This document shows, in pieces, positions 1,802 to 51,849 of a stretch of 64,000 nt of DNA. The position numbers and the translations under genes are program-made. Within the stretch, counting starts at the first letter, position 1, and each line of letters opens with the position of its first letter. The stretch comes from Dendrobates tinctorius (Eukaryota), in the NCBI RefSeq assembly GCF_039654945.1, contig NW_027361792.1, positions 4,092,001 through 4,156,000 of the forward strand, in the 5' to 3' direction. The notes under the pieces were generated by a model. The model worked only from the letters and a program-made list of their open reading frames with translations, did no database searches and had not been told where the DNA came from.

Positions 1802-4427
1802 GTTTACCACAAGTCTGTAACATAATTAGGCCTCTCAGCTTCTGTGTGAAGTTGAGCACATAACAGTGAAGATCTGTGATCAAGATTCATAATAATTAAC
1901 TTTTGTGAACTTTGACCAGACCTACTTGTAGAGTGAGATAATGGTTGTATCCACAGTAAAACATGAGCTATATGTGGTGATTTCCTAACAAATTGTCTCT
2001 TCTGGTCAACCATAGTAATTGGGTTGGTCATTATTGCAATTACTTGCTAAGAAAGTCTTCATATTTCCTTGGCTAGGTCAGTGTCATAATATTTTTGACA
2101 TATCCTACTCCTTATCATTTGCCCTGCAAAGGTTTTGTATGTCATGTCAAGATACTGTTATTTAGGGTTTTGAGCAGGTCCGTTTCGATAAAAATGGGGC
2201 CAATGACTCAAGCAATGAAGAACCTTTTTAGACAGTTATTTCAGTTTGACATATGGTGCCAAGAAAAGCCAGCCTTCTCTGGACCGAGAAGTCATGGCCA
2301 ACAGTCACCAGAAGACTGAAGCCACCAATAGGCTGCAGGATCAGGCGAGGGTAGTTAAAATATAACCCTCTTCTACAACGGCAGAGATAGATGGAGCAAA
2401 GGGTGAATTCTGGGAGTAAGTATCCTTCCTTTAATTTGGAAGCGTACCTTTCCATTGCTAAATTTTAATCAAGACCGAAAAACCTCTTTAAACGGGATCG
2501 GCCAATGAACAACATTTAGGATTGGTGGGTTTGCCACCCACGGAACTTTCAACAATCACAAGAACATGGATCCTTTGCTTCCCTGCTAGGAGGATCACTG
2601 GTTTTGCAAGATACCTATTATGCCATATATAAATGATGGGATGATTGTAACGGTATTATTTATGTGGGTCCAACACTCCTTTGAAATGGAGGGTATGAAA
2701 CAATTAAAGCAAATGGGGAACATACTTCACCACTTTGTCATCCAAACACAGCACATGAGGCCATCACTCTTTTGATCGTAGAAGTCCTACCGAAGGGACC
2801 CCTATCAATTCTGATCAATGAAGCATTCCTGCATAAATGTTGCTCATGGACATCCCTCTTAAGACCTCAAGTAGTTGTGGCCTACAGGTAATATGTTCAA
2901 CTTGGTTTACTTTCCTTTTTAGCTCAGTCTTTTTGTGACTAGTCTGCCAGTATAAATGGATGTTCATGGACCCTGCACATCTTCAGCCGATAGGATTTCA
3001 ACCAAATTGCCTCTTCGTCCAGAAGTACGTCCCTAACAGAGGGGTTGAATATATTTAGGTGTTATGGAAGACAACTACTTACTGACACCCCAGGAAGCCA
3101 TACTACTTATTCTCCACTTATCCTAAGTGTTTACTAAGTGGCCATACCATTGCTCCCTCCTGTAAAGACGTTGGCCAACCGCAAACCATAAATAAGCCAA
3201 GCCGACTGTGTCTCCAGAGAGAATGTGGAAGTGGTTTTGCTAATCACAATATTTTTCCCATTTTACGCATCTCTTCTTCTTTAGATATAATCCTGTGGTG
3301 CCTTTTTTCACTCAGACTGTAAACATTTTAGCTGAAGCAAATCTGGTAATACATGGCTTAAAATAAACCTGTCTCCTGCTTCACTGGGATTTATTGTCAA
3401 GAAAATATTTGTCGCATTCCTAATGTGTGTTTGGTCTAACCTGCGCGCTGTTAGGGGGAAGAGGGCAGCTTGGTATAAAACATAAGGTAGACCATTATAA
3501 GCTGCAATAAATAAAAGGTGGAACAGATTGAGCCTGAGCATGCTTTATAAAGGGACAATTTAGAAAATGTTCTCACTCCAAGACAATATTGAAAAATCTA
3601 GTTTAGGATAATCAATCTAACAAGAAGTTAAGACAGCTGGTTTCGCCGTGATATACAATGTATATCTGGTGAAATATCTGGGGTCTTCTAACCTCTGGTG
3701 GTCCTCTCACCTGGTGGCATTATGCAAAGAGAGCTCAGTACTATGGCACAAATAACTAAGCATTAGTTGATTCAACCCCAACTTCGTAAAGACAGGTGTG
3801 GCACTCCTGAGGGTTCAGTCACCACAGAGGTACTGCACCTCCTCCTGAGGTGTGGTACCCCACTATCCAGGTAAGGTGAAGAAACCTGACCACACTCCAA
3901 CACTCACATCCCACACGCACACCAGTAGTGTAGCAGAGCAACCTTTGTGGCTCCCTGCTTGGAACACGAAGAGTGCTGGGAGGTGGGTGGAGCTTAGACT
4001 GCACAAGAGAGAGGGAGAATATTAGGAAAGGGTCAGTCTGTGAGAGGAGATCCCTTGAGAGGGATGGAGGGAAGGAAGTGCTGCAGCAGACTCCTGTGAC
4101 CTGGAGCTGCTGGCACAGGAAAGAGCCATAGAAAGCCTGATTCTTCAGAAGGAAGAAAGATTAGTGCGGAACGTAAGGAGAAAAGAACTAAGGACTAGGG
4201 TCAGAGCAGAGCCCTTCCTCAAGTATGAAGCGCACTGCCGGAGTCCGGTCTCCGAGGTTGTATGAATACTGATGTTCCTGCAGCAGAAACCGGAGGAATA
4301 GAAGTCGTCACCACTTTATTCCCATCTAAGACTCGGGGGCACAACAGCAACTTTGGTGAGCCGGGACATGATAGCAAGGAGTCCCCGAAGCAGGCTACAG
4401 CTGTCTGCCGTACAAATAGAGTTCTAA

Positions 4428-5080
4428 AAACACACATGTGACATGCACACATGTGAACACGTCGATCAGACAATGCTCACACCACCTACTAACTGAGATA
4501 CAACAAGAAAACACAGAATGACAGATTTGCAAAAATACTCTGCAATAAAAAATGGCAGTAATCAGCTAGTGCTGGATAACAAATACAGGGTATTTAGTCG
4601 ATACTTTTTTTGCGCAAAAAAAATGTACACCAAGCTGCTCCACCACGTCAAGGTAACCCTATTGAAGCAGTCCCTATCTAATGTATTAAAAACCTGAACA
4701 TGTGAACAGTGTCTAATATGAACAGGATTCAGACAGGCCGCTCCCTAATATGGGCTTGTGGTCTGAGACAGCTCTTATGTGCATGTCACACAAGAGAGGG
4801 GTGGGGTCTCCCAAACCATGCCAAGCTAGGAAAAAAATACAGATTAAAAACACACGTGACATGCACACATGTGAACACGTCGAACAGACAATGCTCACAC
4901 CACCCACTAACTGAGATACAACAAGAAAATACAGATTTGCAAAAATACTCTGCAATAAAAAATGGCAGTAATCAGCAAGTGCTGGATAAGTATTTGTTAT
5001 CCAGCACTTGCTGATTACTGCCATTTTTTATTGTAGAGTATTTTTGCAAATCTGTCATTCTGTGTTTTCTTGTTGTATCT
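4428..5080 (-). mobile_element. Non-autonomous tandem retroelement (~420-bp monomer x1.35 plus fold-back segment), Penelope-type structure, carrying an HDV-like ribozyme
   Basis: Direct repeat 4425-4579 / 4845-4989. Segment 4990-5082 is the reverse complement of 4493-4586. TSD CAA(A/G)TAGAGTTCTAA at 4413-4427 and 5081-5095. The empty site is present in the paralogous LTR near 29075-29100. Confidence 0.75.
4585..4670 (-). ncRNA. Candidate HDV/CPEB3-like self-cleaving ribozyme
   Basis: Minus strand folds as: P1 CUGCUUC/GGAGCAG, P2 AUAGGGU/ACCCUGU, P3 ACC/GGU, L3 UUGACGU, P1.1 G-C, P4 hairpin, J4/2 CUAA with the candidate catalytic C at 4597. The +1 pair is an atypical C-G. Confidence 0.55.
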
Positions 5081-7270
5081 CAAGTAGAGTTCTAAGTAAC
5101 ATCAAGAAGGAGGAACTTGAGTTTAATACGCAACTACAAGTACTTCAGATTAGGCGCTAGTGTGGAGACGTTCAGAGAAGGCACATGTTGGAGGAGTGCT
5201 GGAAAGGTGTACTTTACCTTGCCTGGGAGTTGGCTGAGCCCCTGACCTGGAGGACATGGCACTGAAGTGGGCATCTGTGCGCACCAGACTGTGAGTAAAG
5301 CCTTTGGAACTACATGCCCTTGTGTCCTCCACTTATTCCTGCGCCTTGCACCCGGCTCTGCTGCATCTACTTGTTTACACCACCTCCCCATTTACCAACC
5401 TCATATACTCTGCCCTGGGACTACAGCTCCACCTGTGGGGAGCTTCATCATCATTGCGGCACCACACCATCTGTCCCAGAGAAGCAACTCTGCAGCGCTG
5501 GTCAAACTGACCAGAAACCACAGATGGCGTCACGAATCATCCACTTATAAACTTTAATCAGCCACATTTCACCCCTTTTACATGGACGCCAAGGGCCACG
5601 GACCGGGTCACCACTACTGTGACACTTCCCTCTGAGATACCGGCCCAATACCGAGTACCCCACTGCCCTGGCGGGCGATCCACAGGCACAATGGGAAAAC
5701 TCATGTCCAAATGGCGTTGGTGGGAGCTATTCAAGAAGACAGGACTTGGTTCAATACCACTTGTTATGGTCTTAGGCTGGCACCTGCCTAATAAAGCCAA
5801 GTATCAAGACAGTATTTCTAGACCAAGTTCTGCGCCTTCGAATATTTCCCTTCAGCGCCAACTGGACCTAATATTTATGTGTCTTCTTTAGGTGAGGTAA
5901 CCTTTTTGCACCCACTTTGATTTGCTTGGTTAAATTTTAGGTTTACATTGGAAACCTAAAGGGGAGGTTATAGCCAATTATACAGTATATATGGAAATCG
6001 CCTATAAAGCCCTTCAGAGGCAGAACTTGAAACTCCTGGATCCAATGCATAATCAGTAAAAGGGTTTCCGCCTGCATGTGCCATTTAAAAAATTAACTAT
6101 AGGAGAAGGATCGGCGGTGGTATCCAGGCGCTGCCAACAATGTCACAAGTATTGCAGCTGTGTGTAACTACTAACCCTCTACCCCATACCTCTGCATATA
6201 GCTACACCCTGATAACAAAAAATATGTACGTTAGGAAAATGCTATCAGGTTTTTCCCCTTGTGAGCAGTAACCTTTTAAATACGAAGACCATATGGAGAC
6301 CAATTCCCAGTGCTTTTCCTGTAGTCAGAACTTCTGATCTTTGGGTCTATGGGTTCACCAGAGGTGAAGTCATGCATAGGCGCATACATAGTGGAAAGGC
6401 CAGCTCATAGCAAAGTTCAGCACAGGTCTCTAATTTGTGCTAGTCGTTCTCTTTGTTGCTTTGATTTTTGGTATTTCACCTTTTGTTTGCCAATATTATT
6501 GGACTTGTGGAGAGGAGAATGTTCTGTCCTCTAGTCTATTCCCTTTACCTTACATAAAGAAGTCAAATATTTGCAATGATCAATCTAAGAATCGATATTA
6601 GTAGTAGCTAGATAACGTTGAAGGCAACTACATTGGTGCTTCAAGGACCAGTTGGGACTCCATGCCTGCTCAAGCCTACTTACAAGCTATGTGAATAAGT
6701 AGACTATGATGACATGATACGTAAATGTGATAGGCAGATTCTCAAAAGTCTATTTTTTTTTTTTCTTTTTTTAACAAAGCCTATAAGTTTTCTTCAGAGT
6801 CTATGGAGAAGACTAAACAGACAGGGTGGGAAAAAGAATGAAAATGTTCCAAACTTGGGCATGAACTGGAAAGTTAATAACTTCAAAAATATTTGTTCAA
6901 GTGTCTGCCTTGAGATGATGAAAAATATAAGTAGAGAAATATGTATAAAAAAGAATCCATGTAATTGATACGGTCTAATCGTCTAATCTTTCTCACGATC
7001 TAGACAATGTGATGAGCTGCAAGCGATGAATGATAATTTCTCATATGTTCTGTCGCAGAAACCTTTCACAGTGTTAAATACCATAGAAATCCATATTTGG
7101 AGTCTAACATGGTACAAAAAAATAGAACCCAAATGTACTTCTTTAGTATTTTATATTTTGTTTAACTCTATCCTATATAGGTCACCAAGCCGAGCAATAG
7201 CTTGAGGCCACCGGAAACCAACTTGGCCAGTCCATTTTTGACAGGTGACAGTCGGGTGTTGGCCATCTAA

Positions 7271-8144: not shown

Positions 8145-8652
8145 GTGCAGAGGAGAGAGAGGAGAGAGGAAAAGTAGAGGAAAGGGAAGAAATACAGAGA
8201 AGAGGGGAACTGGAGAGGAGAGAGGATAAAGAAGAGATGGTAAATGGAGAGAGGAAAATTAGAGAAGAGAGAGAGGAGATTGGAAATGGAGAGAAAGAAA
8301 GAGGAGATGGGAAATGGAGAGAGAAGAGAGATGGAAAGGAGGGGGGAAATGGAGAGGAGAGAGAGGAGAAAGAGGAGAGAGGAGATGGGAAATGGAGAAG
8401 AGAAATGGAGGGGAGAGAGGAGAAAGGAAATGGACAGGAGAAGGGAAATGAAGAGGAGAGAGGGGTAATGGGAAGTAAAAGGGAAACAGAGAGAGGAGAG
8501 GAGAAATGGAGAGGAGAGAGGGAAAATGGAGAGGCGAGAGAGGGGTAATGGAGTGTAGAGGCGAAATGGAAAAGAGACAGGAAATGAGAGGAGAGTGGAA
8601 ATGGAGTGGAGAGAGTGGGAGAGAAGGATGGATGAGAAGAAAGTAGAGGAGA
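8145..8652 (+). repeat. GA-rich polypurine low-complexity tract
   Basis: About 500 bp of almost pure A/G with recurring GAAATGGAGAG units. Confidence 0.85.
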
Positions 8653-33983: not shown

Positions 33984-34721
33984 ATGGAGATGAAGCAATT
34001 GTCTAATCGTGTGGAGCAGCTCGCTGCTGAACTGCAGGGAATTTCCGCCTATCTTGCTCATTCACATGTTGCTGAGCCAAAGATCCCTACTCCTGATGTG
34101 TTTTTTGGGGATCAGTCTAAATTTCTGAACTTTAAGAATAATTGTAAATTATTTTTTGCCTTGAAGCCTAACTCATCAGGGAGCTCCGCACAGCAGGTTA
34201 AAATTGTCATCTCTTTGCTGCGCGGCGATCCTCAGGTTTGGGTGTTTTCCTTGAAACCTGATGATCCTATTCTAACTAATGTGAACGCATTTTTTCAAGC
34301 CTTGGGGCTGTTGTACGATGAACCTAATGCTATTGATCAGGCTGAAAAGGCCCTGTTGGCATTGAGCCAGGGTCAGGATTCTGCAGAGTTGTACTGTCAA
34401 AAATTACGAAAGTGGGCGGTCCTTACTACCTGGAATGATGGTGCCTTGGCAGCTCTCTTTCAGAAAGGTTTGTCAGAAACCGTAAAAGATACTATGGTGG
34501 GATTTCCTGTTCCCTCTGGTCTTGACGATTCTATGTCATTAGCCATTCAGGTTGATCAGCGTTTGCGTGAACGCAAAACTGCATGAGAGGGGTTGCCACC
34601 TGTTGAACAAATGTCTGAACCTATGCAATGTGATAGAGTTTTGTCTAGGGCGCAATGTCAGGAGTTCAGAAGGCGTAATAAGCTGTGTTTTTTCTGTGGA
34701 GATGCCTCGCATATTATTTCT
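33984..34721 (+). pseudogene. Gypsy gag (Retrotrans_gag, CCHC knuckle), premature stop at 34584 and insertion at 34722
   Basis: Motifs PDVFFGD..F..C.L.F, LSQG..SAE.Y, EPMQ and CFFCGDASHIIS|VC. The frame continues across the stop codon. Confidence 0.9.
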
Positions 34722-34826
34722 AAATATGCAAAACAGAAGCCGCGGAGACACCATCACATGTTTCTCAACGCAAGCAGTGACTAGCCAGGTCTTTCCCCGG
34801 GAAGGAACAACCACGGGAAGGGCAGT

Positions 34827-36365
34827 CATAGAATCGTAGAGTTGGAAGGGACCTCCTGGGCCATCTGGTCCAACCCCCTGCTCAAAGCAGGATTCGCTAA
34901 ATCATCCCAGTTAGATGTCTGTCCAGCCTCTGTTTGAAGACTTCCATTGAAGGAGAACTCACCACTTCTCGTGGCAGCCTGTTCCACTCATTGATCACTC
35001 TAACTGTCAAAAAGTTTTTTCTAATATCTAATCTGTGTCTCCTCCCATTCAGCTTCATCCCATTGCTTCTAGTCTTTCCTTGTGCAAATGAGAATAAAGT
35101 TGATCCTTCTACAATGTGACAGCCCTTTAGATATTTGTAGACAGCTATTAAGTCTCCTCTCAGTCTTCTCTTTTGCAAACTAAACATTCCCAAATCCTGC
35201 AACCTTTCCTCATAAGACAGGGTTTGCAGACCGGTCACCATTCTGGTCGCTCTTTTCTGAACTTGCTCCAGTTTGTTGATGTCTTTTTTAAAATGTGGTG
35301 CCCAAAATTGGACACAATATTCCAGATGAGGTCTGACCAAAGAGGAGTAGAGGGAAATAATTACTTCACGTGATCTAGACTGTATGCTTCTGTTAATACA
35401 TCCTAGAATTGCATTTGCCTTTTTTGCTGCTGCATCACACTGTTGACTCATATTCAGTCTGTGATCTATTAGTATACCCAAGTCTTTTTCACATGTGCTG
35501 TCACTTAGCCCTATTCCTCCCATTCTATATATGCTTTTTTCATTTTTATTGCCCAGATGTAGTACTTTGCATTTCTCCCTGTTAAAAACCATTCTGTTAG
35601 TTACTGCCCACTTCTCCAGTTTATTTAAATCTTTTTGAATCCTCTCTCTCTCTTCTCTAGTATTAGCTATCCCTCCTAGCTTTGTGTCATCAGCAAATTT
35701 AATCAGTTTACCCTCAATTCCTTCATCTAAATCGTTGATAAAGATGTTGAACAATACAGGGCCCAGGACAGAGCCCTGTGGTACCCCACTTGAGACATTC
35801 TTCCAACTGGATGTGCAGCCATTTACGACCACTCTTTGGGTCCGATCACTAAGCCAGTTATGAATCCACCTAACAGTTGCTTTGTCCATTCCATACTTAG
35901 TCATTTTTTCAATAAGGATTGTATGAGAGACTTTGTCAAATGCTTTGCTGAAGTCAAGATATACTATATCTACAGCATTTCCTTGATCCACCCAATCAGT
36001 AATACCATCATAGAAGGAAATTAAATTAGTCTGACATGACTTATTAGTTACAAACCCATGCTGACTCTGTTTAATCACTTCATTCTTATCCAGGTATTGA
36101 CATACATGTTGTTTAATAATTTGTTCAAAGATCTTTCCTGGTATAGAAGTCAGACTCACCGGCCTATAGTTGCCTGGGTCCACCTTCTTCCCCTTTTTGA
36201 AGATAGGAACAACATTTGCTCTTCTCCAGTCTTCTGGCACTTCTCCTGTTCTCCAAGAATTTTCAAAGATTATGGAGAGGGGTTCAAAAATTTCTTCTGC
36301 TATCTCCTTCAGTACTCTGGGGTGTAATTCATCTGGACCTGGAGACTTGAATACATTTAGGTTAG
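34827..36365 (-). mobile_element. 5'-truncated CR1 LINE
   Basis: Uninterrupted RT and C-terminus, CR1 3' UTR and TTCTACGATTCTATGA-type tail. It splits the retrozyme sequence GGCAGT|CTCCAATG. Confidence 0.95.
34897..36365 (-). CDS. CR1 ORF2 reverse transcriptase domain (5'-truncated, open)
   Basis: Motifs KSPGPDELHPRVLKE, NYRPVSLTS, YLDFSKAFD, GVPQGSVLGP and KFADD. The first residues of the listed ORF (MVSFIG) come from the flanking retrozyme. Confidence 0.85.
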
Positions 36366-36406
36366 CTCCAATGAAGGAAACCACCTATGCCAAAACATGG
36401 TATCCA

Positions 36407-36451
36407 TCCACAGACAGCTGTTTCGGGGTATTTGCCCCTCATCAGTGTGGA
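36407..36451 (-). ncRNA. Minimal type I hammerhead ribozyme, intact
   Basis: UCCACA-CUGAUGA-GGGG-CAAAUA-CCCC-GAAA-CAGCUG-UC^-UGUGGA, with palindromic helix III ACAGCUGU. Predicted GUC cleavage between 36413 and 36412. Confidence 0.9.
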
Positions 36452-36759
36452 GTAGGAAACTGGCTAGTAGGAGCAATGCCTAGTAGAAGACTGTGTAAAA
36501 TGAGGATGATTGACCGCATGGAGATCAACATCCAACACTGCGGAGACACCATCACGTGTTTCTCAACGCAGTGATTCTAGAGCACTACCCCCATACCTTA
36601 TGGGAAATATGCAAAATATGCAAAACAGAAGCCGCGGAGACACCATCACATGTTTCTCAACGCAAGCAATGACTAGCCAGGTCTTTCCCCGGGAAGGAAC
36701 AACCACGGGAAGGGCAGTCTCCAATGAAGGAAACCACCTATGTCAAAACATGGTATCCA

Positions 36760-36804
36760 TCCATAGACAGCTGTTCCGGGGTATTTGCCCCTCATCAGTG
36801 TGGA
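36760..36804 (-). ncRNA. Minimal type I hammerhead ribozyme, mutated core
   Basis: Same motif, but GAAA is changed to GGAA and helix I has a mismatch (UAUGGA). Confidence 0.8.
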
Positions 36805-37103
36805 GTAGGAAACTGGCTAGTAGGAGCAATGCCTAGTAGAAGACTGTGTAAAATGAGGATGATTGACCTCATGGAGATCAACATCCAACACTGCGGAGAC
36901 ACCATCACGTGTTTCTCAACGCAGTGATTCTAGAGCACTGCCCCCATCCCTTATGGGAAATATGCAAAACAGAAGCCGCGGAGACACCATCACATGTTTC
37001 TCAACGCAAGCAATGACTAGCCAGGTCTTTCCCCGGGAAGGAACAACCACGGGAAGGGCAGTCTCCAATGAAGGAAACCACCTATGCCAAAACATGGTAT
37101 CCA

Positions 37104-37148
37104 TCCACAGACAGCTGTTTCGGGGTATTTGCCCCTCATCAGTGTGGA
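37104..37148 (-). ncRNA. Minimal type I hammerhead ribozyme, intact
   Basis: Identical to 36407-36451. Confidence 0.9.
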
Positions 37149-37199
37149 GTAGGAAACTGGCTAGTAGGAGCAATGCCTAGTAGAAGACTTATTATTTCT

Positions 37200-40100
37200 G
37201 TCTGCCCTAAACGAGAGAAACGCTTTGCACACACATTTGTTGTGGGTGGTGTTCAACCTAAGTTTCTTCTGGTAATTACTCTGATCTGCTCCCTGTCCAC
37301 ATTTTCCGCTAAGGCTTTTGTGGATTCGGGAGCAGCTCTGAACCTGATGGACTTGGATTTTGATAAACGTTGTGGATTTCCTATGACACCTCTGCGGACA
37401 CCTATCCCTTTGAGGGGTATTGATGCTACTCCTTTGGCGAAGAATAAACCTCAGTTTTGGACCCAGGTGGTAATGCGGGTCACCCCAGACCATCAAGAAA
37501 ATTGCAGATTTTTGGTGTTGCATAATCTGAATGATACCATTGTTTTGGGGTTTCCCTGGTTGCAAATATATAATCCAGTTTTGGATTGGAAATCAGTGTC
37601 TGTGGTGAGTTGGGGTTGTCGGTGTGCCCTTAGTGACGCTCCTGTTTTCTCCACCTCTCCCCAGTCGCATGATGTTCCTGACTATTTGGCTGACTTTTAT
37701 GATGCATTTAGTGAGAATGAGTCTGCGTCTTTGCCTCCTCATAGGAGTTATGACTGTGCAATTGAGCTGAGCCCTGGATGTAAATTTCCCAAGGGTCGAC
37801 TTTTCAATTTATCTGTACCAGAGCACGAGGCTATGCGATCCTATATTAAGGAGTCGTTGGAGAAGGGTCATATTAGACCATCCTCTTCACCCTTAGGTGC
37901 TGGTTATTTTTTCAAGGCCAAGAAGGATGGTTCATTAAGGCCTTGTATTGACTATCGTTCCCTCAACAAAATTACTGTTAAATATCAGTATCCGTTACCC
38001 CTGATTTCTGATCTATTCTCTAGAGTTAAAGGTGCTTGCTGGTTTACCAAGCTTGACCTCAGGGGGGCGTATAATCTTATTCGCATTAAGCATGGGGATG
38101 AATGGAAGACGGCGTTTAATACTCCAGAGGGACATTTTGAGTACCTGGTGATGCCTTTTGGGCTCACTAATGCCCCTTCTGTCTTCCAGTGCTTCATGAA
38201 TGATATTTTCCGAGACTTTGTGGATAAATTTTTGATCATCTATCTGGATGATATTTTGATCTTTTCCAAGGATTGGGACTCTCATGTGGAACATGTTCGG
38301 ACTGTGTTCCGGATTTTGAGGGAGAATTCCCTATATGTCAAGGGATCTAAATGCCTTTTTGGGGTACAGAGGATTTCATTTTTGGGATTTATTTTGTCTC
38401 CGTCAACTATTGAAATGGACCCGGCCAAGGTACAGGCCATTTATGATTGGGTTCAGCCCACTTCTTTGAAGGCCCTCCAGAAGTTTTTGGGTTTTGCTAA
38501 TTTTTATCGTAAATTTATAGCTAATTTTTCTGGTATTGCCAAACCATTGACTGATTTGACTAAGAAGGGTGGTGATGTGTTGAATTGGCCTCCGGAGGCT
38601 GTTTCTTCCTTTAGGGAGCTAAAGTGAAGGTTCACTTCTGCTCCGGTTTTGCGGCAACCTGATGTCTCACTCCCGTTTCAGGTAGAGGTGGACGCTTCTG
38701 AGATTGGTGCAGGAGCTGTTTTGTCCCAAAAAGATCCGGTAACATCTAAAATGAATCCCTGTGCTTTCTTTTCCCGAAAGTTCTCCCCATCTGAACGTAA
38801 CTATGATGTGGGAAATCGGGAACTGTTGGCCATGAAATGGGCATTTGAGGAGTGGAGACATTGGTTGGAGGGAGCTAGACATCAAGTCGTGGTCCTTACT
38901 GACCACAAGAAATTGATTTACCTGGAGTCGGCCAAACGCTTGAATCCTAGACAGGCTAAGTGGGCCTTGTTTTTCACACGTTTTGATTTTGTGGTCTCTT
39001 TTCTTCCAGGCACTAAGAATGTCAAAGCAGACGCCCTCTCTAGAAGTTTCTTTGCTGATTCTCCTGTTGTGACCAAGCCTGCTACCATCTTAGGTGAGGG
39101 GGTAGTTCTTCCTGCCATCTCGCCCGATTTGAGACGTGCTCTGGAAGTGTTTCAGGAGGACAAACCTGAGCGTTGTCCCATTGGAAAATTGTATGTTCCT
39201 GACCAGTGGAGGAAGAGAGTGATGTCTGAAGTTCATTGCTCTGCATTGGCTGGTCATCCAGGTATTTTTGGTACTAGAGATTTGGTGAGTCGGTCCTTTT
39301 GGTGGCCCGCCTTGTCTCGTGATGTCAGGAGTTTTGTGCAGTCCTGTGGGACTTGCTCCCGGTCTAAACCTTGTTCTCGCTCTACTGGGTTGCTGATGCC
39401 TTTGCCGGTGCCCAGGAGGCCATGGACCCATATTTCAATGGATTTTATCTCTGATATGCCTGTCTCTCAGAGAATGACTGTTATTTGGGTGATAGATTCT
39501 CTAAGATGGTCCATCTTGTACCACTCCCTAAGTTGCCATGTTCCTCAGAGTTAGTGCCCTTGTTTTTGCAACAGGTGGTTCGCTTGCACGGGATTCCTGA
39601 GAACATTGTATCTGACAGAGGAGTTCAGTTTATTTCTACATTTTGGAGGACTTTCTGTTCCAAGCAGAGAATTCAGTTGTCCTTCTCCTCTGCGTTTCAC
39701 CCTCAGACCAATGGGCAGACGGAGAGAACAAACCAGACTTTGGAGTCGTATTTGAGATGTTTTATTTCTGCTGATCAGGATGATTGGGTTTCATTTTTGC
39801 CCTTGGCCGAATTTGCTTTAAATAATAGAGCTAGTTCTGCCACTTTGATGTCACCTTTTTTTTGTAACTTTAGGTTTCATCCTCGATTCTCTTCAGGGCA
39901 GGTGGAGTCTTCTGCCTGCCCAGGTGTTGACACTGTGGTGGAGAGAATGCACCAGATCTGGGACCAAGTGGTGGATAGGTTGTCTCTCTCCCAGGAAAAG
40001 GCCCAGCGGTTTTCCAACCGTCATAGGACCATTGGTCCCCAGTTTAAGGTGGGTGATATGGTTTGGTTGTCATCAAAGAATATCTCTATGAAGGTGGCTT

Positions 40101-40509
40101 CTCCAAAGTTTAAACCTAGATTTATTGGACCTTACAAGATTTTGGAGATTCTTAATCCTGTCTCTTTTCGATTGGCTCTTCCTGTTACATTTAAGATCCA
40201 TAACGTGTTTCATAAGTCTCTGTTAAAGAGGTTTGTTGAGCCAGTAGTTCCTGTGGCGGCACCTCCTGACCCTGTATTTGTGGAAGGTAATGTGGAATAT
40301 GAGGTTGAGAAGATACTGGATTCTCGCCTGGCTAGACGGAGACTCCAGTATTTGGTTAAATGGAAGGGTTATGGCCAGGAGGATAATTCTTGGGTCCCTG
40401 CATCCGATATTCATGCCGAAAGATTGGTTTGTGCTTTTCATCGGGCCCATCCTGATCGTCCTGGTGGCGTGGATGAGGGTTCGGTGACCCCTCCTCAAGG
40501 GGGAGGTAC
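37200..40509 (+). pseudogene. Gypsy pol: protease, RT, RNase H, integrase, chromodomain (stop at 38625, frameshift near 39490)
   Basis: Motifs FVDSGA, LRPCIDYR, YLDDILI, VEVDAS, ERNYDVGNRELLA, H..HPG..C..C, SDRG.QF, HPQTNGQTER, GPY and EYEVEKILDSR..YLVKWKGYG.EDNSW. Confidence 0.95.
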
Positions 40510-41132
40510 TGTTGTGAGTTCATTTTCCCCTTCACCGTTGATGTCTGATGAACTCCCTCTGCTGGTGAAGAGAGGTAGTGAAATTGATTGGGTTGAGAAG
40601 AACCTGTCATCTGAACAGGTGGAGCCTGATTGGACACCCGGAATCACTGAGTGGATATAAGGCAGCCGACGCCCTACCGGGGTGCTGGTGATCCTTTCTG
40701 CTCTGACCTCTTGCAACCAGTTAGTCCTGTCTACTGAAAGCTAAGTTTTTGCTCTCTTATTTTTCCATGAGATTTTGTCTGTTTGCTTCGTGTTTTGTGT
40801 TCAGCCTGCCTTTGTTGGGAAGGGCTGAGCTCCATTTTTGTCTCTGATCAGTTTATCTCTTTTTCCCTATCAGACGGTTTGGACATTTTTGGTAGGGTTT
40901 TTTGCGGATTGCAGCCAGCATCTTTTCTGTCCTTTCCTATTTAGTTAGTTGGGCCCCATCGTTTGCTCAACCTGTCTTTCTGTCTGTGTTTTCATCTGCT
41001 TTTCACCGACAATACATGTTGGGGGCTGTCTATTGCTTTGGGGTCTGCAATCCGATAGCTACCAACCTCTCCGGTTTTCTGGACTTAGCTTGTATTTTTG
41101 TTTTTTCCTCCTTCGGTGACTCATTCATAACA
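40510..41132 (+). repeat. 3' LTR
   Basis: Follows the PPT and matches the 5' LTR. Confidence 0.95.
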
Positions 41133-50631: not shown

Positions 50632-51849
50632 CACTCACTGGCCACTTTATTAGGTACACCATGCTAGTAAGGGGTTGGACCCCCTTTTGCCTTCAGAACT
50701 GCCTCAATTCTTCGTGGCAGAGATTCAACAAGGTGCTGGAAGCATTCCTCAGAGATTTTGGACCATATTGACATGATGGCATCACACAGTTGGCGCAGAT
50801 TTGTCGGCTGCACATCCCTGATGCGAATCTCCCGTTCCACCACATCCCAAAGATGCTCTATTGGATTGAGATCTGGTGAATGAGGAGGCCATTTGAGTAC
50901 AGTAAACTCATTGTCATGTTCAAGAAACCAATCTGAGATGATTCGAGCTTTATGACATGGCGCATTATCCTGCTGAAAGTAGCCATCAGATGTTGGGTAC
51001 ATTGTGGTCAAGGGATGGACATGGTCAGCAACAATACTCAGGTAGGCTGTGGCGTTGCAACGATGCTCAATTGGTACCAAGGGGCCCAAAGAGTGCCCAG
51101 AAAAAATTCCCCACACCATGACACCACCACCACCAGCCTGAACCGTTGATACAAGGCAGGATGGATCCATGCTTTCATGTTGTTTACGCCAAATTCTGAC
51201 CCTACCATCCGAATGTCGCAGCAGAAATCGAGACTCATCAGACCAGGCAACGTTTTTCCAATCTTCTACTGTCCAATTTCGATGAGCTTGTGCAAATTGT
51301 AGCCTCAGTTTCCTGTTCTTAGCTGAGAGGAGTGGTACCCAGTGTGGTCTTCTGCTGCTGTAGCCCATCTGCCTCAAAGTTCGACGCACTGTGCGTTCAG
51401 AGATGCTCTTCTGCCTACCTTGGTTGTAACGGGTGGCAATTTGAGTCACTGTTGCCTTTCTATCAGCTCGAACCAGTCTGCCCATTCTCCTCTGACCTCT
51501 GGCATCAACATGGCATTTCCGGCCACAGAACTGCCGCTCACTGGATTTTTTTTCTTTTTCGGACCATTCTCTGTAAACCCTAGAGATGGTTGTGCGTGAA
51601 AATCCCAGTAGATCAGCAGTTTCTGAAATTCTCAGACCAGCCCTTCTGGCACCAACAATCATGCCACGTTCAAAGGCACTCAAATCACCTTTCTTCCCCA
51701 TACTGATGCTCGGTTTGAACTGCAGGAGATTGTCTTGACCATGTCTACATGCCTAAATGCACTGAGTTGCCGCCATGTGATTGGCTGATTAGAAATTAAG
51801 TCTTAACACACAGTTGGACAGGTGTACCTAATAAAGTGGCCAGTGAGTG
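50632..51849 (-). mobile_element. Tc1/mariner DNA transposon, DD36E (Incomer-type), full length
   Basis: Perfect 29-bp TIRs CACTCACTGGCCACTTTATTAGGTACACC, TA TSD, 1218 bp total. Confidence 0.95.
50664..51701 (-). CDS. Tc1-family transposase, 345 aa, DD36E
   Basis: Paired-like [19 protein letters not shown] and [11 protein letters not shown]. There are 36 residues between the second D and the E. Confidence 0.92.

Follow-up and report, generated by a model that had tools for sequence, protein, structure and literature searches.

The stretch at 4670-4585 on the minus strand of the window (the whole 64,000-nucleotide piece of Dendrobates tinctorius DNA that was analyzed) is likely a member of a real variant of the HDV-like ribozymes, with predicted self-cleavage 5' of C4670. 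In this variant the HDV-like core would exist in a second state, in which C1-G37 stands in place of G1-U37 and G22-C38 in place of C22-G38, while the rest of the core is kept. As far as comparison of sequences can tell, this swapped core is probably a real and uncatalogued form of the HDV-like ribozyme for which cleavage is predicted. The wider reading, that the swapped core is a functional, uncatalogued branch of HDV-like ribozymes, which is common to phages and a vertebrate retroelement and would drive a "delta retrozyme" in the latter, is one that we favor with reserve. Literature searches of partial coverage returned neither a swapped-core variant, nor a cleavage test of one, nor an HDV-type retrozyme.

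The helices that the initial annotation had described in HDV order, i.e., P1, P2, P3 with L3, P4 and a J4/2 starting with CUAA, were all recovered letter for letter at 4670-4585 on the minus strand (Table 1). The candidate follows the order P1-P2-P3-L3-P3'-P1'-P1.1-P4-J4/2-P2' of the HDV-like descriptor, which is that of a nested double pseudoknot. P1 (4670-4664 with 4641-4635) and P2 (4662-4656 with 4591-4585) have seven pairs each, one U-G pair being included in either helix, and with the three pairs of P3 all helix lengths lie inside the published ranges for HDV-like ribozymes (P1 6-7 bp, P3 3 bp, P2 at least 5 bp). L3 reads UUGACGU (4651-4645), with G4649 at position 22 and with U4651 and G4646 at the reverse-wobble positions; the conserved U and C-G of L3 are present as U4651, C4647 and G4646. 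J4/2, given as CRRA in the published descriptor, opens in the candidate with the cytosine and carries the adenines (C4597-U-A-A). The candidate departs from the descriptor at two pairs. The cleavage-site pair is C4670-G4635 instead of G1-pyrimidine, and P1.1, which is formed in the descriptor by a C of L3 and a G after P1, is turned around, C4634 directly after P1 being able to pair with G4649 of L3. In the HDV-like family the G1-U37 wobble at the cleavage site is reported to be highly conserved and important for the rate. An alternative extended P1 (GGG/CUU with a bulged A), which had been proposed for the same stretch, can be drawn as well.

Table 1. Features of the candidate ribozyme and of the insertion that carries it, in positions of the window.
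Feature	Positions	Strand	Remarks
Candidate HDV-like ribozyme, swapped-core type	4585-4670	-	predicted cut between A4671 and C4670
P1 5' strand CUGCUUC	4664-4670	-	pairs with 4635-4641; C4670 is the +1 base
P1 3' strand GGAGCAG	4635-4641	-	G4635 is position 37, followed by C4634 (position 38) and UU to 4632
P2 5' strand AUAGGGU	4656-4662	-	pairs with 4585-4591
P2 3' strand ACCCUGU	4585-4591	-	pairs with 4656-4662
P3 ACC/GGU with L3	4642-4654	-	4654-4652 with 4644-4642, three Watson-Crick pairs
P4 hairpin, U8/A7 stem, GCGC loop	4598-4631	-	within 4633-4598
J4/2 CUAAAU	4592-4597	-	C4597 is the candidate catalytic cytosine
Upstream AUAGGG, rival partner for the P2 3' strand	4672-4677	-	in the minimum-free-energy fold; cleavage would release it
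One full 418-nt unit of the non-coding element	4428-4845	-	tandem joints 4836 to 4428 in other copies
Partial upstream unit, 144 nt, 3' arm only	4846-4989	-	starts 6 nt past the ribozyme end (unit coordinates)
Inverted arm copy, 95 nt	4990-5084	+	unit positions 4586-4494; palindrome with 4846-4989
Target-site duplication TAGAGTTCTAA, left copy	4417-4427	.	11 bp
Target-site duplication TAGAGTTCTAA, right copy	5085-5095	.	extends to 15 bases with one mismatch

The HDV-like ribozyme motif is unique in the window. A scan of both strands of the 64-kb window with a descriptor built from the candidate's elements with modest length freedom returned 4670-4585 as the sole match. In 150 simulated sequences of 128 kb with the dinucleotide content of the window, the bare topology was matched 0.72 times per sequence, the topology with the P1.1 pair and the C opening J4/2 0.08 times, and after addition of the L3 pattern U..G. 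and of C.AA in none of the 150 simulations; since the descriptor was written after the candidate had been seen, these figures flatter it. Other tests were less informative. No match to Rfam 15 was obtained at gathering scores in the whole window, and the comparison with the HDV and CPEB3 models that had been suggested at the outset failed even at E<=10, none of the HDV, CPEB3 and drz families being reported on 801 or on 111 bases around the candidate. This is a test of little power. The phage examples described below, swapped and classical alike, escape Rfam, and because it misses phage theta ribozymes of the published type its silence on the candidate says little. The minimum-free-energy fold of the candidate (101 nt) has a z value of -1.46, and 17 of 200 shuffles folded equally well. 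This fold is a nested rival, in which the upstream AUAGGG at 4677-4672 is paired with the P2 3' strand, and J4/2, C4597 included, with UUGGU. As a duplex the rival AUAGGG reaches -6.5 kcal/mol compared with -8.2 kcal/mol for P2; over 90 nt the nested part of the HDV drawing contributes -12.9 kcal/mol in addition to the -8.2 kcal/mol of P2, and the nested rival has -21.2 kcal/mol. Judged on Rfam, folding energy and the C-G pair at +1 alone, a real ribozyme would appear distinctly improbable.

The evidence that carries the main finding was obtained from phage genomes, under explicit controls. Viral contigs were searched with the pattern ACCTTGNCGTGGTNNNNNNGC, which consists of P3, L3, P3', the P1 3' strand ending with G and then C, and holds the candidate's 14-base core. 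This resulted in at least 120 loci, with 110 distinct sites among the matches listed. The fold filter asked for seven pairs in P1 and 5-9 in P2, and for a J4/2 that starts with C and contains AA. A complete HDV-like fold was found at 30 of the 110 distinct ACCTTGNCGTGGTNNNNNNGC sites among the matches listed, and the same filter was passed by 1 of 2200 sequences in a flank-shuffle control. Among the matches listed, the swapped phage folds comprise 20 distinct combinations of P1 and P2; P1 positions 2-7 show 3-5 types of pair and the P2 positions 4-6. The +1 base is C in all 25 distinct phage rows, and every P1 recovered starts with C. Moreover, J4/2 is CUAA in 16 of 20 phage representatives, CUAA followed by 0-2 bases being the rule, and P1 is followed by CUU (C38, then UU) in 17 of 20, the UU lying outside the search pattern. 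The commonest L3 of the swapped phage class is UUGACGU. As the phage set was retrieved with the candidate's own core, identity in P3 and L3 is given by construction and has no evidential weight.

The covariation was quantified with a covariance model that was built from six minimal phage examples, with P1 and P3 only, and that recovers 33 sites in 100 loci. In the model-based alignment both-side changes occur in six of the seven P1 pairs. The cells of the alignment are paired to 98.8% versus 78.8% in shuffles, none of 500 shuffles reaching the observed value, and to 28-54% if the partner strand is slid. Since the swapped core also folds with a GCC/GGC version of P3, for which the fold was completed at 14 of 106 sites, the first P3 pair covaries as well. 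One viral contig of 617 kb holds two swapped motifs with P3 GCC/GGC and with different P1 and P2 (L753 and L777). Two approaches were abandoned. A MAFFT alignment of the phage examples mis-aligned P1 and P2 because the junction lengths differ and was replaced by the model-based alignment and a parse. A 20-base core pattern searched in metagenome and viral contigs gave chance matches, which shared only the 20-mer and lay in a GC-rich, coding-like context.

The two turned-around pairs are strictly coupled. In a six-way test on viral contigs, P3 and the rest of L3 were fixed and positions 22, 37 and 38 were varied. The state of the window (G22, G37, C38) gave full folds at 30 of 110 distinct sites among the matches listed and the classical state (C22, U37, G38) at 28 of 110. 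Of the mixed states, G22/U37/G38 folded at 0 of 106 distinct sites, C22/G37/C38 at 0 of 102, G22/U37/C38 at 1 of 106 and C22/G37/G38 at 0 of 103. Comparison of matched and mixed states gives a Fisher P of about 3e-28, a value that is overstated as related phages are not independent. Because the matched states fold and the mixed ones do so at 0-1 of about 105 sites, the letters form a second, internally consistent state of the HDV-like core. The swapped P1.1 and the C-G pair at +1, of which the latter had been regarded as atypical in the initial annotation, are thus the linked hallmarks of an HDV-like variant that recurs and covaries in phage genomes. The published HDV-like descriptor fixes both the G1-Y and the C-G P1.1 pair and is therefore blind to the swapped state.

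The classical phage examples have a G at +1, and since those at L140 and L154 start 2 nt after a tRNA they match the arrangement of theta ribozymes. None of the swapped phage examples adjoins a tRNA. One phage tRNA array combines a classical theta-type ribozyme with a ROOL RNA (L140:8971-9618, 298 bits). In the phage contig L127 (L127:6740-6812 and L127:7092-7150) one swapped-core motif is found 280 nt downstream of a RAGATH-1 hammerhead, with a large tRNA array following the motif, so that this region may be rich in ribozymes.

The candidate in the window belongs to this covarying class. All four of its coupled positions (C4670, G4635, G4649 and C4634) are in the swapped state, and it fits the class consensus of L3 UUGNCGU, UU after C38 and J4/2 as CUAA plus 0-2 bases. 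The C at +1, the UU after C38 and the CUAA are class features that lie outside the search pattern and are present in the candidate. Further common features are the 6-nt J4/2, which also occurs in several phage members, an A before CUAA and a hairpin P4. With a covariance model made from phage sequences only, the candidate ranked first in the window with 33.8 bits and an E value of 2.3e-5, a score that is partly given by construction. Phage members with a long P4 score 33-38 bits in the same model, and the candidate lies within this range.

The ribozyme motif is part of an insertion of 657 bp (4428-5084), the anatomy of which was determined by blastn within the window and pairwise alignment. 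In minus sense it consists of an inverted arm (5084-4990), a direct arm (4989-4846) and a full unit (4845-4428), the arm being the last 160 nt of the full unit; the three arms are about 2% apart in substitutions and differ in addition by two indels. The insertion is a young, well-bounded insertion of a non-coding retroelement. The ORFs of the element had no relatives in a protein search, and neither other ribozyme families in the element nor a hammerhead core or an Rfam match in 4300-5100 were found; weak Rfam hits to miRNA hairpins on the inverted arm (4990-5084) are noise. In the minus sense the RNA of the unit is more stably folded than its shuffles (z -2.86, 0 of 100 shuffles as good); for the plus sense the z value is -1.49. 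The fixed end of the insertion is the 3' end of the strand that carries the motif. Neither end of the insertion coincides with the predicted cut, and in unit coordinates the partial copy starts at 4579 and the inverted one at 4586-4587, i.e., at the 3' edge of the fold, as would fit a reverse transcriptase stopping at a compact structure.

Copies of the element were collected as contigs of four public runs of uncertain run type, which were aligned at 80% likeness; the contigs are about 130 nt long and the best-supported differences were considered. The family comprises thousands of contigs from three organisms. Contigs of the empty site skip 668 bases, one joint having 15 ambiguous bases and one being bridged by a 713-nt contig. 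In other copies the element is arranged head-to-tail, with joints from 4836 or 4821 to 4428 and few letters between. The proposal of a non-coding tandem retroelement is thus backed by empty-site joints, tandem joints and the target duplication. The proposed tandem of about 420 nt corresponds to a unit length of 418 nt; the locus itself has one full unit next to the partial unit and the inverted piece, and the motif once. The motif occurs once per 418-nt unit, and with a single ribozyme copy this locus cannot release a unit by itself. The flanks (4100-4416 and 5096-5400) are a very high-copy repeat in the four runs, and other copies of this repeat give the empty-site form.

Within the ribozyme the copy in the window differs from the family majority at 4605 and 4628. 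Both departures lie in P4, so that the core letters are the majority letters in all four runs. The rate of differences elsewhere in the unit is similar to that in the ribozyme. An extra base in the P2 5' strand is present at 10-43% of the family depth, and L3 differs in one set of contigs from organism B. The contig of greatest depth in run X15 has unlike sequence in place of 4661-4774; its P1 3' strand is GGAGUGG, for which pairing with CUGCUUC would still be possible by way of wobbles.

A mechanism can be proposed for the spread of the element. Arrays of the element would be transcribed in minus sense, and the transcripts would cut themselves 5' of C4670, giving rise to RNAs of unit length that bear 5'-OH and cyclic-phosphate ends and may be circularized by a host ligase. 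A reverse transcriptase acting in trans could copy the unit RNAs into new sites by target-primed synthesis, and such copying would explain why the insertion has a defined 3' end and an 11-bp duplication, and why it includes a partial tandem and a 5' piece that is inverted. The cleavage, the circles and the identity of the copying enzyme are what we infer in this scheme.

Elsewhere in the window a second tandem element was observed. It lies on the minus strand at 34712-37199 and is made of tandem units, each about 348 nt long, with hammerhead cores (CUGAUGA, helix II as GGGG...CCCC, and GAAAC) at 37142 and 36445; a third copy at about 36797 reads GGAAC. Rfam at E<=1 reported no hammerhead on 34712-37199. 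This array is flanked by AGAAATAATA and shares the insertion style of the HDV-like element: its 3' end is fixed, its first unit is truncated at the 5' side, and there is a duplication of 10 bp. Inside the last unit of the array lies a reverse-transcriptase ORF of 495 amino acids (34900-36384, minus strand), which ends near a ATTCTATG motif. It seems to be a fragment of a CR1-like LINE nested in, or captured by, the hammerhead array. The best matches of this CR1-like reverse transcriptase are from lizards (84% for Salvator merianae, 73-74% for Podarcis), turtle and bird, with no amphibian among the best 120 matches listed. The hammerhead/LINE insertion splits a Ty3/gypsy-type retrotransposon on the plus strand (33984-40657; gag, RT, RNase H, integrase and chromodomain). 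Moreover, the window contains an intact ORF for a Tc1/mariner transposase of 345 amino acids (50667-51701, minus strand; HTH_Tnp_Tc3_2 and DDE_3 domains), for which an exact-match look-up gave no record, and, at 8155-8613, imperfect tandem repeats that are rich in purines (GA) and have periods of 18-99.

Two other explanations have to be weighed against a self-cleaving variant. The better one, which we regard as unlikely, is that the swapped motif is a selected structure in phages and in the element that does not cleave, e.g., a pseudoknot that binds a protein or blocks reverse transcriptase, or a stability element. Covariation proves a conserved structure and not catalysis, and the partial copy and the inverted one start at the fold's 3' edge (4579-4587), as would result from a strong block of reverse transcription. 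Moreover, the swapped phage examples do not adjoin tRNAs, unlike the classical form, and the swapped core is without the cleavage-site wobble that is reported to be important. However, the class differs from the cleaving theta-type ribozymes at the four coupled positions only and keeps the catalytic C followed by.AA, the U and G of L3, the 7-bp P1 and the 3-bp P3, and the swapped example at L127 neighbors a hammerhead ribozyme. An even less probable explanation is that the candidate is a chance look-alike or a dead relic and that movement of the element involves no ribozyme: 0.72 matches to the bare topology are expected per window and very many windows were screened, the folding energy is unremarkable with a simpler nested fold that pairs C4597, and some family variants are without the core, but only two states are allowed at the four coupled positions and the candidate has one of them, in addition to CUU, CUAA, P1 and P2, the full descriptor was matched in 0 of 150 simulations with 1 of 2200 in the flank-shuffle control, the core letters equal the family majority in four of four runs, and the element is built like a ribozyme-bearing retrozyme with no other ribozyme found inside. 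A swapped HDV-like core that cleaves is therefore preferred here.

If a second allowed state of the HDV-like core is real, past surveys have under-counted the family, as their descriptors fix the G-U wobble and the C-G pair of P1.1. The strict coupling of both swaps would then be a natural experiment on the P1/P1.1 stack that positions the scissile phosphate. If the element is indeed an HDV-type retrozyme, the ribozyme of such elements would be an exchangeable module. There would also be a genomic source of small RNAs bearing an HDV ribozyme in vertebrates, which bears on the origin of the ribozymes of delta-like agents.

In comparison with known systems, the closest relatives are the theta ribozymes of gut phages, minimal HDV-like ribozymes for which the cut site G1 is placed at the 3' end of a tRNA and which were validated in vitro (Kienbeck et al., 2024, PMC10879173). 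The nested double pseudoknot is common to theta ribozymes and the candidate. The classical phage examples recovered here have P3 ACC/GGU like the candidate, L3 UU.NCGU, J4/2 CUAA or CCAA and a P4 that is either short or a hairpin. The theta form has G1, U37, C22 and G38 and is found at tRNA 3' ends, whereas the candidate and its phage relatives have C1, G37, G22 and C38. Similarly, the CPEB3 ribozyme and the candidate both have a 7-nt L3 ending with ACGU and a single Watson-Crick P1.1 pair beside U-U, and both are without J1.1/4. Unlike the candidate, CPEB3 has the C22-G pair, a G1-U wobble and a 4-nt J4/2, and it is a single-copy, conserved intronic element of mammals. Much sequence variation is tolerated in the HDV-like ribozyme family.

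For the element as a whole, the animal non-LTR retrozymes are the nearest counterpart. These are tandem elements that carry hammerheads and are associated with Penelope-like elements (Cervera and de la Pena, 2020; bioRxiv 10.64898/2026.07.22.740005), and in reviews and the 2026 preprint retrozymes are described with hammerheads only (bioRxiv 10.64898/2026.07.22.740005). Retrozymes and the element described here consist of non-coding tandem units of a few hundred nucleotides, occur as dispersed copies with target duplications, and have a structured unit RNA and one ribozyme per unit. The retrozymes carry a type I hammerhead in each unit, whereas the element has no hammerhead and an HDV-type fold instead. 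An HDV-type ribozyme that serves a retroelement is known from R2, RTE, L1Tc and the non-autonomous NARTc, the latter being a non-coding one like the present element. In these cases the ribozyme lies at the extreme 5' end and defines the end of the element, in contrast to the candidate, which is internal to a tandem unit in an element with a fixed 3' end.
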